A stretch of 63,979 nucleotides of DNA, filler included, from Lenisia limosa (taxonomy: Eukaryota > Protista > Breviatea): the NCBI GenBank assembly GCA_001655205.1. It is 5 parts of 5 records of this genome, joined end to end, with 100 filler letters (N's around TTAATTAATTAA, not from the genome) between each part and the next. Parts side by side here need not be neighbours in the genome. Positions count along the whole stretch, not along the records: positions 55,346 to 63,979 come from LPNZ01011566.1; 4 more parts are not named here. The stretch is one strand, 5' to 3'. Positions 55,101 through 63,979 of this stretch are shown here, piece by piece (position 1 is the stretch's first letter; each line of letters opens with the position of its first letter). Made by a program: the position numbers and the translations under genes. The notes under the pieces were generated by a model. That model made no database searches. It worked only from the letters and a program-made list of their open reading frames with translations, and was not told the origin of the DNA.

Positions 55101-55628
55101 ACGAACTTATTTTCTATTTTTCTCGCTCAGACTGGTGTAGAGAGAGATACAAACTCATACCCAACTCTGACCCAAAAACTGCCTCATGCTTTAGCTGCAT
55201 CCGGATGTGATCATATGGGATCAGGAGCTTACATAGTATGATATANNNNNNNNNNNNNNNNNNNNNNNNNNNNNNNNNNNNNNNNNNNNTTAATTAATTA
55301 ANNNNNNNNNNNNNNNNNNNNNNNNNNNNNNNNNNNNNNNNNNNNTGAGCCACTTATTTGAGATAGTTTCCTTATCTACTAGTTCATATTATCAACAAAC
55401 GATGCCTTTGATTTCCACTCGTTATGTGACATTTCAGTCGAAACTTGAACCATTGCACTCTCGTACACTCCTTGCATCCCTTCACCCATCAACTACACTT
55501 GACCTTGACCCTCCCCAACCTCCACCAACTGTCGACCAACCACCATCCAAGCACCCTAAGAAATGTAATTATATGATTTTATTCATCAATATTATTCGTG
55601 ATGATACAATACAATATATTATATAATA

Positions 55629-57510
55629 TTATATATTTTTATTGTAAATAGGGTTCTCCACAGACATGGCACGAGGTGGCTTGTCATCGAATGTGGATGG
55701 GCTGATGGTGGGCATGTCCTTGATCCCGATGTCAACACAGTCGATCGCCAGGGTCTCGACCTCGTCATCATCTGAGGGGATAGTTATATCCTCAACACAC
55801 AAATGGAGGAACAGATGGTGGCAATCCTGAAGGGTCAAAGCTATTAATAAAATTGTCAACCAACACTGAGGTCCTGGGCTGTGGGCCTTCGGTCTGGGCG
55901 CATGTTTTTGAGAGCGGCTGTCAAAGGAAGTAAGCCGTGACAAGCCTCTGCAAAGGCGGGTAAAGGCTTTTGATGGCCTGACTCTCAAGATACCATGGCT
56001 TTTGCCAGACAAAAACTTCCACATTCCGCATGAGGAACACACTTGATTCAAAGCTAAAGCGGTTATTTCAGGAGGAGAAAAAAAGTAACGAACTCCTAAC
56101 TAACTTTGAACGCACAATGTTAAACCCAAACACGTCAACATATTCTTCTTGAATGTGGCCATACTACAAAATAACCATCAAAAAATGAACAAAATATGAC
56201 GTACCTCCGCCCCACAATGATAACACTCTTTGGCATGTGGGTGGTCTAAGAATAGTTCTACAGGAATAACACAATATTTCCTAACTAACCAGCATCAGAA
56301 CATTCCTCCCAGAGAGCAACAGCGACCTCATCCTCGGCAGTGGGATCAATGGACCACTTTTCCATTGGCATTCCTGAAACATGAGGGAGTTAAAAGGCAG
56401 AGAATCAGCCATCATCACAAACCGGTTCTGAAATGACAAGGGGATTTAAAATACCCCTCAGGCTGCTCATCTTCGTCGCTCTCGTCGCCTCCGCCTCCGT
56501 CATACATCTCCATTGGTTCCCATCTCTCCATGGCCTTCAGTCCAAATCGGTGCTCACACCCCCAAGTCGGCAAGTGCACCTTGTGGAGCCTTTGGACCTA
56601 TAGAATTACTCAAAGAGAAAAATCATGCAAAAACTGTCTCCCAATTCCATTATTGTTGCGTCATTTCAACATACACTACATGTAATATACTCTCATTTTA
56701 AAACGCNNNNNNNNNNNNNNNNNNNNNNNNNNNNNNNNNNNNNNNNNNNNNNNNNNNNNNNNNNNNNNNNNNNNNNNNNNNNNNNNNNNNNNNNNNNNNN
56801 NNNNNNNNNNNNNNNNNNNNNNNNNNNNNNNNNNNNNNNNNNNNNNNNNNNNNNNNNNNNNNNNNNNNNNNNNNNNNNNNNNNNNNNNNNNNNNNNNNNN
56901 NNNNNNNNNNNNNNNNNNNNNNNNNNNNNNNNNNNNNNNNNNNNNNNNNNNNNNNNNNNNGTAGCAAACGAGCCTACACATCAGAGATAGACGTACAGAA
57001 TCTCGGTTGTCCGAAAGTGAAAGACAACTGACTCTCATTACCGTTGACAGCCATCTTCAGGTGGATGTTGAAACTAAGATGTTATCTACCAATTTTGAAA
57101 CTTTTGAAGAAGCCATATTCCTGGCGCAATTTTGATATGTCAAGAGATAAATACGTGCGCTTATCAAGCTCGGCATGGTGAACCGGTTCAATGAACTCCT
57201 TAGAAATTTGAATGTGATGGCATGGTTTGAGGTCGGAAGCTACAAGTGTCTTTAAAATCAGCCAACTTACAAGCAATATCAAGAGGTCATCTCACCAGAC
57301 AGTCCTAGGCAAGGCTGTGGTGGCAAGTGGTACACATTGAGAGCTCATGCCTCACCCCATCCAAGTCGTTCAAAAAGGAAAGGTATACTATAGTGGCTTC
57401 GTTCTAGAAAGTATACAATCAGTTCAATCAAGAACAGTACTCTACTAACCTGTTTGGTCTGCAGGCCAGCAGGGGTGGTAGCTTGCCACAGATAGACTCG
57501 AACCCCCTGG
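55629..57510 (-). CDS. Unidentified multi-exon gene with ordinary GT-AG introns
   Basis: Exons ASDLKPCHHIQISKEFIEP...FFKSFKI, VQRLHKVHLPTWGCEHRFG...DESDEDEQPE, GMPMEKWSIDPTAEDEVAVALWEEC, ELFLDHPHAKECYHCGR. Confidence 0.45.
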
Positions 57511-58195
57511 GGCCAAAAGTCCTTCCTTTCCTCTTTAACCTTTATATATTAGTTTTCCTAAACGCGAGGTGCAAAGACGTCTTCAATAAAGTGTAGATGA
57601 ATCGACGATTAGTTTTGTCGGAAGTCGGAAGCTGGAAAGTAATCATCCCTAACTTTTTATTTTTAAAATAAAGCACTCAAATTATGAGAATCTTGGATTT
57701 ATGCATTAGTTATTTGGGTTTTACAGAAGTTCTATAAACGTAATAAGTCCAAATTTTGGGACTGGGGGATATACATTGTCCGTGAACAAGGAACAAGGTC
57801 AGATTAGCCTTCACTAAATAAATTGAAGCACTAAGTTACTTGGTGCCTCAAAATAGTTCAAAAAGAAAACAAAATAATTTTTTTAATGTGGCACTGCTAT
57901 AACTTCTTGCATCTTTAGAGATGTGAAAGGGGTTGGGGAAACCAAAACTATCTTTAAACTCTAAAGGGCAAAAACCGATTCTTAAGGATTTTTTAAAATA
58001 ATTGTTTTTACTTAAATGGTGTATAATGTCCTCCACAGGTCGTCACATTGCACTTCCTGCCCCACAGCGCCTCTACAGGCATGACTAAAACCGATCCAGA
58101 CCCAAAAATGTTTCCCCAGGCTTAGAATATTACTCCCCGTGGCCTTTTTTTTCCTTCTCAGCGGTATTTTCCAAATCAAATACCCCATGAAAGAA

Positions 58196-59348
58196 CTAAA
58201 CATAAATTGGTGCCCATTTGAGGTCTAAAAGAGAACAACTTGGTTGCTTGACAGACCGTTGTAATTCAAATTGATTGTTAAGAACAGAGACAATGTCGGA
58301 AGGATGGATTGATGATAAACGACTGATACTCGAGAATGACAACCGAGAGTTCGTCAAAAACAAGTGAAGAATATTCATCTGCCAAAATTTCTGAAAACCA
58401 ATTCGGCCAAGGTCACTTAATGGTTTTTCAGGAGATCCCACCAGTTTTTCAATTTTGCTTAAACTGTAAGCAAAATGAAGAGAGAAAAAAAACAAAGAGC
58501 AATCATTTCTTGTCCCAAGCCTTGCCGTTGATAAGGAGGAAGAGTTACTATACATGCTAAATTGTATTGATCTGGAGAAAACTTTTCCATTGTTGAAACA
58601 TAACAAAGAACTTTGGAAAAGTAGCCCAAAAAAGATGCTCCTTGAGAAAGAGATTTCACCATCACATAAAATAAAAACGGTTCAACATCAAAATATCAAG
58701 TTACAACTGTAAAAACAAACAAAGTTTTATGATCTAAAAAGAGCTTTGAGATCAGGCAAAGATTTTGACAGTAGGCTTTTTGCAGAAAACCATCTACTTC
58801 AAAAATAGAAAACTTCTCAGTGCGAACAACTTCTCTGCCTGGAGGTGTTCTTAATGAACACTTTAACAAATAATAAATAAAAAGGAACTTTATGCTTAAT
58901 AAAATATTTTGAATTTCGAAAGTATTTCAGACAAAAGGAACATAAAAAAAGAAAAGGGCAGGAAGAGATCTGTGGGAATGGACTGTAATACCAAGTTTCA
59001 ATTTTAAAACCATTTAAAAATATATCATATCAATATAAAAAAAAAACATGAAATATTTTTCACCATATTTTGACCATTCAACCGTTTCTCTGATAAACAG
59101 ATAAAAATACCTTCAGGTACCCTTTACTAGAACAAAGTTGTTTAACATTACGTTTTGAGACCCATTCATCTAGTCTATGATTAACTAATCAATAAAGAGA
59201 AGTAACATCCATAATAGTGGACATACACCTGATCACTTACAATGTCCAGTACTGTTCCCTTTCCAGTGTAAGAATCAAACAAAAAACGTTTTGCTCCAAC
59301 ATCTTTCAGAGTAACTAGCACTTCAGCACCTACCTCAACAGTTTTCAT
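58196..59348 (-). CDS. Compact MYST-family histone acetyltransferase (Esa1/KAT5/KAT8 type: Tudor-knot, C2HC zinc finger, MYST core) with eight 22-28 nt introns
   Basis: Spliced product: MKTVEVG...[16 protein letters not shown]...[23 protein letters not shown]...LCSFCLKYF...[13 protein letters not shown]...IFEVDG...[29 protein letters not shown]...GYFSKEK...[18 protein letters not shown]...SYSLSKIE...[11 protein letters not shown]...[10 protein letters not shown]. The catalytic Cys and Glu are intact. Confidence 0.92.
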
Positions 59349-59380
59349 TTTTCAAAACTGTTTCAAAGAAACAACCCAAA

Positions 59381-59725
59381 CAGGGCAGCCATGACGGTCA
59401 GTATATAAACACCACAGGTTTGGGTATAACAGCCGTTTTTTGACCTCTTATTTCATCGATTTTTAGTCTTACTGATTTGAAGGTAGCCCCGGTTTTNNNN
59501 NNNNNNTAATTTTTCTGATTTCCACCTGATTTCTGATTTCCGCCTGATTTATGACCGGTGGGATATAAATATATCATATTAGTAGATGAAACAAATTATT
59601 GAAGGACATATTTGAAACCGTGATGTCTTCGATGATGATAAAGGTAGTAAAAAGAGAAAATAAGACCATAACAATGTTCATTATACGCCACCTGGGGGGT
59701 TTATATAATGACCGTCATCCCCTTG
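59381..59725. mobile_element. TIR element family C, short two-ended copy
   Basis: Left end cagggcagccatgacggtcagtatataaacaccacagg; right end cctggggggtttatataatgaccgtcatccccttg. Confidence 0.78.
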
Positions 59726-59755
59726 CCTCTTGACTCCAAGCCACCTCAATCCAGC

Positions 59756-60623
59756 CAGGGCCATGACGGTCAGTATATAAACACCACAGGTTTGGGTATA
59801 ACAGCCGTTTTTGACATCTTATTTCATCGATTTTTAGTCTTACTAATATGAAGGTAGCCCCGGTTTTTGATATATAGTATGTTACAACTACGTTAAACTG
59901 CGCTCTGACTGGAAGAAAAAATATTTCATGACACATGACTGGGAAATCTGTCATTCTTAAAAATTGGAAAGAATGTTGCAAAACCGCGAAGGTAGGCATT
60001 ATTTGTTTCAATAATGTATATTTACATCTGTTTTCAGAGTGAAAAGGGAAGAAAAAGACAGTTTGTTGTCCAAGAACCTTATTTCCAACAATGCGCGTCT
60101 CGAGGTGTGTCTTCTACCATGCTATTATGTTTAAATTATCCATAAACCTTCATATTATACTCTTGATAACACAATGCTTTCGGGTGCGCCATCTTTCCTC
60201 CGATTCTGATCTCAAAGAAGATCATCTGTTTCGATAGGTACACAGTGTCGTCACTATGTCTCTCTGTGATATTCTTCTTACCTCTGTATTGGTTTTATGT
60301 TGTGGGGGCAAATTTCTTCTTATCCATGGTCTGTGCTTGCCTGTTGCGACCTCTGCTCATCCCAAACAATAAGATGTTTATGTTTACTTCTCCACCTCTG
60401 TTATTATGATGTTAGGTTAGGATATCTATGTGTGAATACGTCACTGTCAAGCTGATTTGTACTCACTGAATGCTGCCAGGGCAGGCTTGTTCACTTGCTC
60501 GACCAACTCCAACAAACCCCCCCCCCCATCCCGGTAGAGTGTTTTTGTCACCATTATTATCCATTGAGTTGAGTTTCCTCTTTTAATACATCAGAAACAT
60601 GCACTAATCTGTTGGACCCATAT
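59756..60623. mobile_element. Family C long copy
   Basis: Starts CAGGGCCATGACGGTCAGTATATAAAC. It is highly similar to 62466-63097 apart from an extra segment of about 200 bp. Confidence 0.78.
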
Positions 60624-60789
60624 NNNNNNNNNNAAAATAAAATAAAACAAAACGTAGTTCAATCAACAACATATTTGGTTATATCAAATACACCAAAATA
60701 GACTGAATTAAGAGAAATTCATATCATATGTCATTATAGTAGTATCATTAAAACTATTAATTTGATAGATACATATAAAATGAATGTGA

Positions 60790-61230
60790 TCAATAAACCA
60801 GTCATACAGGCTCAAAAAAGGCGACTGCGTTGACACGGTTGGGGATGACTATAACAGTCTTTGTGGATGCAATCAAGTCGAACATTAGCGCTCGAATACT
60901 GGCATCAGGATGCTAAAAAATCATGATTATTCTTCTCAATGCTTGATAATAACATATAACAAATTCAAAAAACTTAGACAACTCTTTATTTAGTTCAATT
61001 TTAACAACACCGCCTACGTTGATATATTTTATAATCACTGTTTCAGCGGAAGATGCCATGTCAATCCGTTCCGCGTGTGATAATCCTTGCTCATCGTGAC
61101 TTTGCACAAGGGAGGCGTCGAGGGGTAAATGTACGTATACCGTTTGCTGTGAGGTAACAAAGTGCCAATCAGGATTATCCGAAATTCTGAAGTGGTAGAT
61201 TCTCAGGAGCTTCAGCATGTTGTCCACAAA
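60790..61230 (-). CDS. Possible gene fragment
   Basis: A 104-aa ORF continues in frame after one TAG (HPDASIRALMFDLIA...), consistent with an intron ending ttttag. No family recognised. Confidence 0.25.
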
Positions 61231-61279
61231 CCAAAATCAGAAATAGGCGACAAATACAGACCTAACCAAAGCAAATGAG

Positions 61280-62470
61280 AAATAAATGTCAAACACCACT
61301 CTGCTTGGAATCAACTCACCATGACCCACCAATCCAAGTTCGAAGCCACGACATATAGTCTGAAGGCTGCCAAGTCCTCCCTGAAAAAGTCAGTAAAAAC
61401 CTGGTCGAAGCTCAAGGAGTCAGTCCAAGACAAAGTCATGGAAGTGGGTGTGGACCAAATGAAGATGGAAAGTAAACCTATGCGGTGCAATATATCAAAA
61501 AGGCAGGAGCAAGACTTCAGCCCCCCAAATCCGCTCCAGTATCCGCAGTCCTTGAACCAGTGAATCCCAAAGAACCCAACCCAGATAAACAGAAATGGCA
61601 CATACACATTTATCTCGTCTAGAAGTAGAAAAGCCCTCACACAGTACTACGAGGCACTCCCATCGCTCTTGTCCTCCTAAAAGGATAGACCTCTGGAACA
61701 GTTATGGTGCAACGAAACAACACAGGCTGCACGAGATCAGGATAGGGAGATATTTCCACTTACCCCACTCACTCTATGGCTCCCAAAGACAGCAAGTGGA
61801 GTACACAGGGAACAAGGAGAGTTGGAAGAATCTAATAAAAGAGATCACCCTTGAAGAGGTTAGTGAATCCTTCAGGAAAGCAAGTAACACTACTCCTGGC
61901 CAAGATGGTATAACTAACAATATGCTTAAGTTTGATTCCCCAAAATGTACACTCTGCAATCTCAGCAATATACAATGCCTCCATCCAAGAAGGCCTGTCT
62001 CCCTCTATCCACCACGCAAGCACCATAACCCCTATTCCCAAGAAAGAAGGAGTATGACCCTTTCCCTGAAGGATCACAGGCCTATCTCGCTACACCCCTG
62101 CACCAATCTCACCTCAATCATGGCATCCCGGCTCCTCCAAATTATATCATACACTCTTCACAGCAAGGGTTTATCAGCGAAGACAATACAACCAACCAAA
62201 TAAACTCAGTCATCAGAATGCTAGATTCAACCTTGAATGAAGAAAAATTCGGCAACTCAGCTATTAAACCGATTAATCTAGCAACTTTGGACTGGTTTAA
62301 AGCATTTGATTGTCCTTCTATGGAGTAAATAGACCTACCTCTACAAAGGCTTCATATCGCTAAAGTATTCATCAATCTAGTAAAGAGTATGAAGAAAAAG
62401 GCTACTGGGCAAATTAAAACTGATTATGGAATTTCAAAAAATTTCCCATTAAAAAAGGGCTCCCACAGGG
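61280..62470 (+). pseudogene. Decayed non-LTR (LINE) retrotransposon reverse transcriptase
   Basis: ITLEEVSESFRKASNTTPGQDGITNNMLK, DHRPISL, LATLDWFKAFD and GLPQG are the RT domain 0-4 motifs. There are frameshifts and stops, and it is truncated at PQG by a TIR-family insertion. Confidence 0.85.
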
Positions 62471-63097
62471 CCATGACGGTCAATATATAAACACCCCAGG
62501 TTTGGGTATAACAGCCGTTTTTGACCTCTTATTTCAGCGATTTTTAGTCTTACTAATTTGAAGGTAGCCCCGGTTTTTGATATATGTTATAAAATATGAT
62601 ACAACTGCGTTAAACTGCGCTCTGACTGGAAGAAACAATATTTCAATTATACTCTTGATTACACAATGCTTTCGGGTGCGTCATCTTTTCTCCGATTCTG
62701 ATTTCAAAGAAGATCATCTGTTTCGATAGTTATACAGTGTCGTCACTATGTCTATCTCTGTGATATTCTTCTTACCTCTGTATTGGTTTTGTGTTGTGAG
62801 GGCAAATCTCTTCTTATCCATGTTCTGTGCTTGCCTGTTGCGACCTCTGCTCATCCCAAACAATGTTTACTTCTCCACCTCTGTTCTTATGATGTTAGGT
62901 TAGAATATCTATGTGTAAATACGTTGTCAAGCTGATTTGTACTCACTGAATGCTGCCAGGACAGGCTTGTTCACCTGTTCGACCAACTCCAACAACCCCC
63001 CCCCCCGGTAGAGTGTTTTTGTCACCATTATTTTCCGTTGAGTTGAGTTTCCTCTTTTAATACATCAGAAACATGCACTATTTTGTTGGACCCATAT
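62466..63097. mobile_element. Family C long copy inserted at the LINE RT PQG motif
   Basis: Direct repeat of 59756-60623; both copies end gttggacccatat. Confidence 0.78.
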
Positions 63098-63112
63098 GAT
63101 GCCATAATCATA

Positions 63113-63820
63113 TATGTGGGTCATCAAAGCTCCGAACATCATTCATGATTCCCGGACACATCAAAACTCCCGGACAGCTTGAAGTTGACACCTTGTATAA
63201 GCCAGTGTTNNNNNNNNNNNNNNNNNNNNNNNNNNNNNNNNNNNNNNNNNNNNNNNNNNNNNNNNNNNNNNNNNNNNNNNNNNNNNNNNNNNNNNNNNNN
63301 NNNNNNNNNNNNNNNNNNNNNNNNNNNNNNNNNNNNNNNNNNNNNNNNNNNNNNNNNNNNNNNNNNNNNNNNNNNNNNNNNNNNNNNNNNNNNNNNNNNN
63401 NNNNNNNNNNNNNNNNNNNNNNNNNNNNNNNNNNNNNNNNNNNNNNNNNNNNNNNNNNTTTTGCTTTGGCTATGTACTGGTGAATTTTGAGGGGAAAATG
63501 CTAAAAATAGCACTGTCTACAGGGGTAAACTTTCCCGGATAGTTGCCATTTATTCCTTGAATGTGGCCTTTTATAACGGTTTTTGCTTGTTTTTGACCGT
63601 TTTTGGACCGTAAATAGAGAGCTTAGGGACTTAATTTGGTTTTGACCCGATAATATGTTAAATTGGGGTTTCATTATTTGATTAAGATTGAGATTACTTT
63701 CAAAAACAGAAGGGAAATTGGGTTTCTGGGTGGTTTACGGTAATTTTGTATGGAAAACTCAAGCTGTCCGGGAGTTTTGATGTATCCGGGAATTTTGAAT
63801 GATGTCCGGAGCTTTGACTA
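63113..63820. mobile_element. Family B, copy 3
   Basis: Same TIRs and shared interior (cccggatagttgccatttattccttgaatgtggcc). Confidence 0.82.
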
Positions 63821-63979
63821 TACATATACAGTACATCTGAATTTTCCTTGCAATGGAAACGAAAACACTTTCATAATATGATAAAATACACACATTACAT
63901 TACAGTTTGCAAGAAATGGCTCTGAAGAAGAAGTTTATACATAGTTAAGAACATTGTGCAAGATGGAAGCAGGTGACGA

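Follow-up and report, generated by a model that had tools for sequence, protein, structure and literature searches.

A MYST acetyltransferase gene of Lenisia limosa with eight probable ultrashort introns, most of them apparently ending in TG

Can a spliceosomal intron do without the AG at its 3′ end? This dinucleotide is among the most invariant signals of eukaryotic genes; U2AF35 reads it early, and in the second step of splicing it pairs with the 5′ G and the branch adenosine. The question is raised by a locus in the stretch of DNA analysed here (the window; 63,979 nucleotides (nt) with filler), which joins five parts of the Lenisia limosa assembly GCA_001655205.1. The part taken from LPNZ01011566.1 (positions 55,346 to 63,979, 8.6 kilobases (kb)) carries on its minus strand a gene for a MYST acetyltransferase, which an earlier note, made from the sequence alone, could read only after excising eight tiny T-rich segments, five of them bounded by GT and TG. 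We believe, with a probability of roughly 75%, that this is a functional and expressed KAT8/MOF-like MYST gene with eight real U2-type introns of 22-24 nt, whose 3′ site needs a terminal G only. The exon-intron anatomy, the fit to homologues, the sharing of two intron positions with other MYST genes and the presence of the gene's sequence in polyA RNA are direct observations.

Exon-intron structure and the encoded protein

The model consists of the following features, given in the coordinates of the window.

58196-59348, minus strand: coding region of the KAT8/MOF-like MYST acetyltransferase, from ATG (59348-59346) to the stop codon TAG (58198-58196); nine exons and 322 amino acids in the revised model
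59264-59287, minus strand: intron 1, 24 nt, GT..CTG, phase 1; in frame and stop-free if retained, ambiguous
59185-59206, minus strand: intron 2, 22 nt, GT..TAG, phase 1; splits the putative chromo-barrel sequence YYG/FNHRLDEW
59088-59110, minus strand: intron 3, 23 nt, GT..GAG, phase 0; within a linker of low conservation
59026-59047, minus strand: intron 4, 22 nt, GT..ATG, phase 1; obligatory, nearest AG 43 nt downstream
58889-59025, minus strand: exon 5, with the greater part of the C2HC zinc finger; matches Pfam zf-MYST at positions 9-52 (E=1.5e-13)
58867-58888, minus strand: intron 5 as revised, 22 nt, GT..TTG, phase 0; in the earlier form 28 nt, GT..AAG, ending at 58861
58697-58720, minus strand: intron 6, 24 nt, GT..TTG, phase 2; obligatory, in-frame TGA if retained
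58588-58611, minus strand: intron 7, 24 nt, GT..ATG, phase 0; between YFSK and EK
58471-58493, minus strand: intron 8, 23 nt, GT..TTG; obligatory, interrupts in phase 1 the codon for the Ser that precedes YSLSK
58196-58470, minus strand: exon 9, [20 protein letters not shown], catalytic Glu and C-terminal part; MOZ_SAS positions 103-171, KAT8 structures at E=3e-11

All eight segments were found where the earlier note had placed them on the minus strand, with the same lengths and terminal dinucleotides, and their removal gave an open frame of 963 nt in which the quoted sequences [28 protein letters not shown] and MIALSYSLSK are found. Only one boundary was changed. When intron 5 is taken as 22 nt with a GT..TTG structure, the open frame grows to 969 nt and the protein from 320 to 322 amino acids. 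The TG class was hence confirmed, while its size had to be corrected from five members to six.

We tested the gene model in three ways, none of which presumes splice signals: by Pfam positions, by scoring of alternative models and by a scan of the boundaries. Translated singly, exon 5 covers zf-MYST 9-52 and exons 6-9 cover MOZ_SAS 1-41, 43-70, 71-100 and 103-171, and the MOZ_SAS positions that are absent between these pieces are split codons. The match of exon 9 to KAT8 structures begins exactly at the Y of SYELSK. For the scoring, we used a profile built from 33 full-length MYST homologues of a representative protein search. The earlier model reached 361.1 bits and the model with the 22-nt intron 5 reached 367.1 bits, a gain of 6.0 bits that goes along with restoration of the H-x3-C part of the zinc finger (HKLKC). 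The 28-nt GT..AG form of intron 5, with which this spacing is incomplete, fits less well. In the boundary scan, all frame-preserving and stop-free pairs up to 15 nt from each end were allowed with any dinucleotides, giving 1894 variants. The best removed lengths were 24, 22, 22, 22, 24, 24 and 23 nt (for intron 3, which lies in the unconserved linker, the scan singles out no length), and at every well-conserved junction a boundary starting with GT stood in the top-scoring tier. For the TG-ended introns, GT..TG boundaries were in this tier each time. Finally, the alignment with the homologues is free of indels at junctions 4-8.

The individual introns differ in how tightly they are fixed. Retention of intron 2, 3, 4, 5, 6 or 8 truncates the protein. 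As the earlier note had argued, three TG-ended segments are obligatory: retaining intron 4 or 8 shifts the frame, and the in-frame TGA lies in intron 6. For intron 8, the GT..TG boundary is the unique optimum of the scan, and intron 6 is flanked by MOZ_SAS 1-41 and 43-70. We also tried GT-AG, GC-AG and AT-AC alternatives within 45 nt for every intron; those for introns 4, 6 and 8 delete 5-26 residues or scramble conserved motifs and were rejected. Intron 7, a further TG-ended segment, was correctly seen to split YFSK/EK, and MOZ_SAS positions 70 and 71 are contiguous across the junction. Its retention keeps the frame at a cost of 16.5 bits. The only in-frame GT-AG option, 30 nt long, was ruled out by its score of 346.3 bits, which is 20.8 bits below the best and 14.8 bits below the earlier model.

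Intron 2 has a unique best boundary in the scan, and its retention leads to a stop at residue 48. The removal of intron 3 is needed for the frame; its boundaries are not fixed by homology. This intron ends in CAGAG, of which the CAG (position 21) is bypassed for the GAG (position 23) to keep the frame; the 3′ end may be a tandem acceptor giving a non-productive isoform. The first intron was already regarded as ambiguous, and it stays so, because its removal is favoured by just 3.2 bits and a Pfam search with exon 1, intron 1 and exon 2 read through gave no match. Keeping it, or removing it as a 36-nt GT-AG version, loses 3-4 bits.

The resulting 322-residue protein is 37-44% identical to full-length MYST homologues, and the nearest solved structures are those of KAT8/MOF (PDB KAT8 chains, E=3e-11). 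Four exon pieces match MOZ_SAS (PF01853) with E values from 1.7e-7 to 1.7e-15. The C2HC zinc finger (PF17772) is present, and its C-x2-C-x12-H-x3-C pattern is complete only with the 22-nt intron 5. In agreement with the earlier claim of intact MYST motifs, LDHKTL, NLACI, QRQGLG (the Q/R-x-x-G-x-G loop for acetyl-coenzyme A (acetyl-CoA)) and SPEKP are all intact and align with the homologues, as does the zinc finger. We take the roles of the catalytic Glu and Cys, of the autoacetylated Lys and of the acetyl-CoA loop to be those they have in Esa1 and MOF. The chromo-barrel is less clear, with a 24-residue piece resembling Tudor-knot positions 41-54 at E=0.008, which is under the curated cutoff, while [15 protein letters not shown] of this region aligns with the homologues. 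With KAT8/MOF, Esa1 and Tip60 (among others PDB 2y0m, 4dnc, 1mj9), the protein shares the C2HC finger and the MOZ_SAS core with its Cys, Glu, autoacetylated Lys and acetyl-CoA loop, and probably the chromo-barrel, but it is shortened to 322 residues. It has a very short linker and, relative to the homologues, two C-terminal deletions, as expected of a reduced genome.

To place the introns in a wider context, we compared the spliced translations of three unrelated MYST loci from public assemblies (L003, L005 and L008). Intron 7 has a counterpart in L005, where a phase-0 GT-AG intron separates YFSK from EK. Intron 8 has counterparts in all three loci, whose phase-1 GT-AG introns interrupt the codon of the Ser that precedes Y-E-L/I-S-K. 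The introns of L003 (1132-1166) and L005 (322-378, 473-513, 758-799), which lie at the intron 7 and 8 positions, are 35-57 nt long and belong to MYST genes on low-coverage metagenome contigs of other eukaryotes. In addition, many open-reading-frame fragments of the representative search begin just before YELSK. The two TG-ended introns 7 and 8 occupy old, conserved intron positions.

Evidence from RNA and DNA reads

A polyA RNA run (X1) is available from the same study as the DNA. Of 111 31-mers sampled from the gene, it contains about 70, a share of 0.63. Over the interval 57000-59496 the share falls to 0.28, which is again about 70 of 251 words. Because both counts contain about 70 words, every word shared with the RNA comes from the coding region, and the flanks contribute none. 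Complete removal of the eight introns predicts a share of 0.622, removal of the AG-ended ones alone 0.855-0.907, and full retention 1.0. The probability of finding 70 or fewer words at an expectation of 0.855 is 4e-9. The RNA word share is therefore, as indirect evidence, consistent with complete removal of the eight introns.

On the DNA side, a contig from the DNA run X2 (1316 nt, depth 39.5) corresponds to 58102-59417 with zero differences. It follows that the TG bases are present in the DNA, although X2 may be the very sample behind the assembly. One might suspect that sequencing or assembly errors turned AG into TG, since the locus sits on a gapped draft scaffold. The contig matches without a difference at this depth, and it is not credible that the same error arose six times, each time at the corresponding position; we consider this explanation negligible.

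The same reads bear on the idea that the segments are eliminated from the DNA, like the internal eliminated sequences of ciliates, or are skipped during translation. Removal of the segments does restore the gene, and the shortest eliminated sequences of Paramecium overlap them in size. However, the segments are at full depth in the DNA run, and the RNA share fits their absence. They lack TA boundaries, and five of the eight allow no boundary sliding at all. Moreover, every one starts with GT and two sit at conserved positions of spliceosomal introns. A process at the level of DNA or translation is accordingly very improbable, and we return to splicing.

Choice of the 3′ end and known systems

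With intron 5 revised, the eight introns measure 24, 22, 23, 22, 22, 24, 24 and 23 nt. They all begin with GT, extended to GTT in seven cases and to GTA in one. Their 3′ ends read, in order, CTG, TAG, GAG, ATG, TTG, TTG, ATG and TTG, which gives TG in six and AG in two (introns 2 and 3). The final G is present in 8/8, although only 7% of the bases inside the introns are G; together with the GT starts in the boundary scan, this regularity is not due to chance. T accounts for 63% of the interiors and for 35% of the exons. The adenine-containing motif that had been noticed just before each end can be placed more precisely: in every intron, an A falls within positions 17-19, at a distance of 4-6 nt from the 3′ end and often as part of T-N-A-Y. 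Earlier G's and AGs inside the introns, such as those at positions 14 (intron 6) and 21 (intron 3), are bypassed, and the G that is used stands at position 22-24.

The tight range of 22-24 nt, together with the A at position 17-19, suggests a rule of distance or length. In such a scheme, this A would be the likely branch point, and the 3′ site would be recognised not as an AG but as a terminal G whose short distance to the branch point or to the 5′ site is fixed. The base before the terminal G (T six times, A twice) is roughly as the intron's own composition predicts. That the spliceosome cuts at TG, which adenosine forms the branch and that distance sets the 3′ end is what we infer from the anatomy described above. 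One may go further and speculate that the AG rule is relaxed throughout this genome for ultrashort introns, with the cut falling at the first G a few fixed bases past the branch adenosine, in which case most introns would end in TG because they are T-rich. For this broader version the odds are slightly against, and we put it forward as tentative.

Could nearby AGs be used instead? The statement of the earlier note that no usable AG lies nearby holds in so far as none rescues introns 4, 6 and 8; it did not mention that an AG follows 5-7 nt downstream of the TG end in four of the six TG introns (1, 5, 7 and 8). Intron 6 has an AG 10 nt upstream of its end, so that five of the six have one within 5-10 nt, intron 4 with its 43 nt being the exception. 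Splicing at these AGs, with TG as a minor alternative at most, would resemble the TG-AG tandems of human genes and would make productive MYST mRNA rare or absent. The distances fall inside the 28-nt limit reported there (PMC2374985), and the 28-nt intron 5 and the 30-nt intron 7 would remain in frame. On the other hand, the reading frame would be lost if the AG were used at intron 1 or at intron 8 (where it lies 7 nt past the TG). After the internal CAG of intron 6 (position 14), all three frames run into stops, and for intron 4 the closest AG is 43 nt away. With AG ends, introns 5 and 7 bring the score 6 and 20.8 bits under that of the best model and cost conserved residues. Above all, an intact 969-nt frame with all catalytic motifs would have no reason to persist. 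We therefore regard AG use as unlikely, about as one would an outside chance of one in ten, and continue with the TG-ended introns.

How unusual would such introns be? In human genes, TG 3′ sites are alternative only, never the sole site, and lie within 28 nt of an AG, with about 0.01% of the candidate sites in use (Szafranski et al. 2007, PMC2374985), which bears out the earlier assertion that GT-TG introns are very rare elsewhere. The likeness to these tandems extends to the U2 type, the GT at the 5′ end, the TG at the 3′ end and the downstream AG in four of six introns; the difference is that here TG is the only productive site at least for introns 4, 6 and 8. A precedent for a lineage that dropped GT and AG is the tunicate Fritillaria borealis, in which 95% of introns are non-canonical at both ends and the change came about by way of divergent U2AF paralogues, while the core spliceosome is kept (PMC13326754). 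In the MYST gene, only position -2 is relaxed, and the 5′ GT and the terminal G are kept.

With regard to size, introns of 22-27 nt are known from dicyemids (PMC2222250, PMC6543705, PMC6736024) and from myxobolid myxozoans (PMC13644364), and these published ultrashort animal introns have reduced GTa 5′ and AG 3′ signals with a few A's before the 3′ end (PMC13644364). They share with ours the narrow length range (median 22-27 base pairs there), the reduced motifs, the weakly conserved A's near the 3′ end and the conserved positions. The genomes are compact, repeat-rich and parasitic, and the ~37% GC, the N gaps and the repeats of the 8.6-kb piece come near the published figures for Dicyema japonicum. 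In the literature we searched, we found no report of TG-ended (non-AG) introns in dicyemids or myxozoans. To our knowledge, neither AUGUSTUS nor BRAKER3 has a TG acceptor model by default, so that such introns could have been missed. AUGUSTUS was used in the dicyemid genome papers and BRAKER3 in the myxozoan paper (PMC13644364). According to work cited in PMC2222250 and PMC13644364, tiny introns also occur in Paramecium (~25 nt), Stentor (15-16 nt) and the Bigelowiella nucleomorph (18-21 nt). Those of ciliates and nucleomorphs are similar in their extreme, uniform shortness and in a branch A a few bases from the 3′ end. As far as we know, they keep the 3′ AG. The MYST gene differs from these systems by its standard genetic code and its animal-like intron positions.

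Several observations weigh against our interpretation. No RNA contig was placed over 56961-59496 and no exon-exon junction was seen, which may be a false negative. An unspliced transcript that has diverged by ~1.5% from the assembly would equally give the word share of 0.63. When we used exon 9 to search two protein collections for the organism's own spliced protein, no identical match was found, and in an exact look-up of the exon-9 open reading frame with two alternative starts, neither was on record. A loose intron pattern (GT, 22-24 nt, T-rich, A near position 18, WG end), seen at 58791-58813, 58663-58707 and further minus-strand sites, also occurs five times in the MYST exons and elsewhere ~10 times on the minus strand versus three times on the plus strand; it is not specific, and the signal that defines the introns is thus not fully captured. 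Relative to the dicyemid and myxobolid logos (GTa and AG, derived from annotations), the introns here have GTT in 7/8 and TG in 6/8. By analogy, the human rule that TG is never the sole 3′ site (PMC2374985) would also speak against it. Finally, a single gene was examined, as no other could be recognised on the piece.

The first two of these points would also suit a transcribed pseudogene, or a gene that retains the segments, in which the AGs were lost by mutation: direct junction evidence is absent, the 0.63 may reflect divergence and not splicing, and repeats lie on both flanks. Against this stands that the RNA words come from the gene alone, in the share expected of a spliced transcript. In addition, six independent A-to-T changes at position -2 would have to have occurred next to 969 nt of exons free of stops and frameshifts and with intact motifs, which is very unlikely, as the earlier note had reasoned for its five segments. 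We judge a decayed or unspliced gene a little less probable still than AG use, and keep to real introns with TG ends.

If these introns are indeed constitutive, they would offer a natural system for testing which contacts of the AG are dispensable, and they would show that in introns of 22-24 nt a site can be chosen by distance alone. RNA confirmation of the TG ends would loosen a basic rule of splicing. Gene finders restricted to GT-AG would split or lose such genes, so gene catalogues and inferences of gene loss in highly reduced parasites may be biased. Should the relaxation be genome-wide, GT-AG-only annotations of dicyemids and myxozoans would miss or break many genes, which could contribute to low gene counts and BUSCO scores.

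The surroundings of the gene

The MYST gene is the sole recognisable gene of the 8.6-kb piece, which has ~37% GC, contains four N runs and is rich in repeats. Ten further open reading frames of the piece gave no Pfam match, and a search of the piece for Rfam families gave none either. The DNA depth is raised 3-9 fold in 56961-57130, 57386-57470, 58066-58150 and 59341-59496, so the gene forms a unique island of ~1.2 kb among repeats. In one X2 contig, 57507 is followed by 58104, with 13 other letters in place of the 596 nt between them.

Direct repeats of ~870 nt at 59756-60623 and 62466-63097 (90-97% identical) bracket a 1.8-kb segment, and a partial copy at 59437-59496 adjoins the 5′ flank of the MYST gene. 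The bracketed segment contains an open reading frame of 202 codons (61595-62203, plus strand) with an RPISL-like motif, which has no Pfam match and no relatives in the protein collection searched; the segment may be a decayed retroelement.

The only other contig of the same genome that we recovered, NODE_2757 of the European Nucleotide Archive (ENA) entry ERZ3820729 (6572 nt), is without a recognisable gene and is 100% identical to 60634-63204. At the gap of 10 N's (60624-60633), it runs on for ~4 kb with unrelated sequence; the scaffold may conceal sequence at this join or connect distinct copies of a repeat. A 70-nt inverted repeat (63113-63182 and 63759-63828) lies close to the end of the piece, and its arms are 87% complementary and 576 nt apart.
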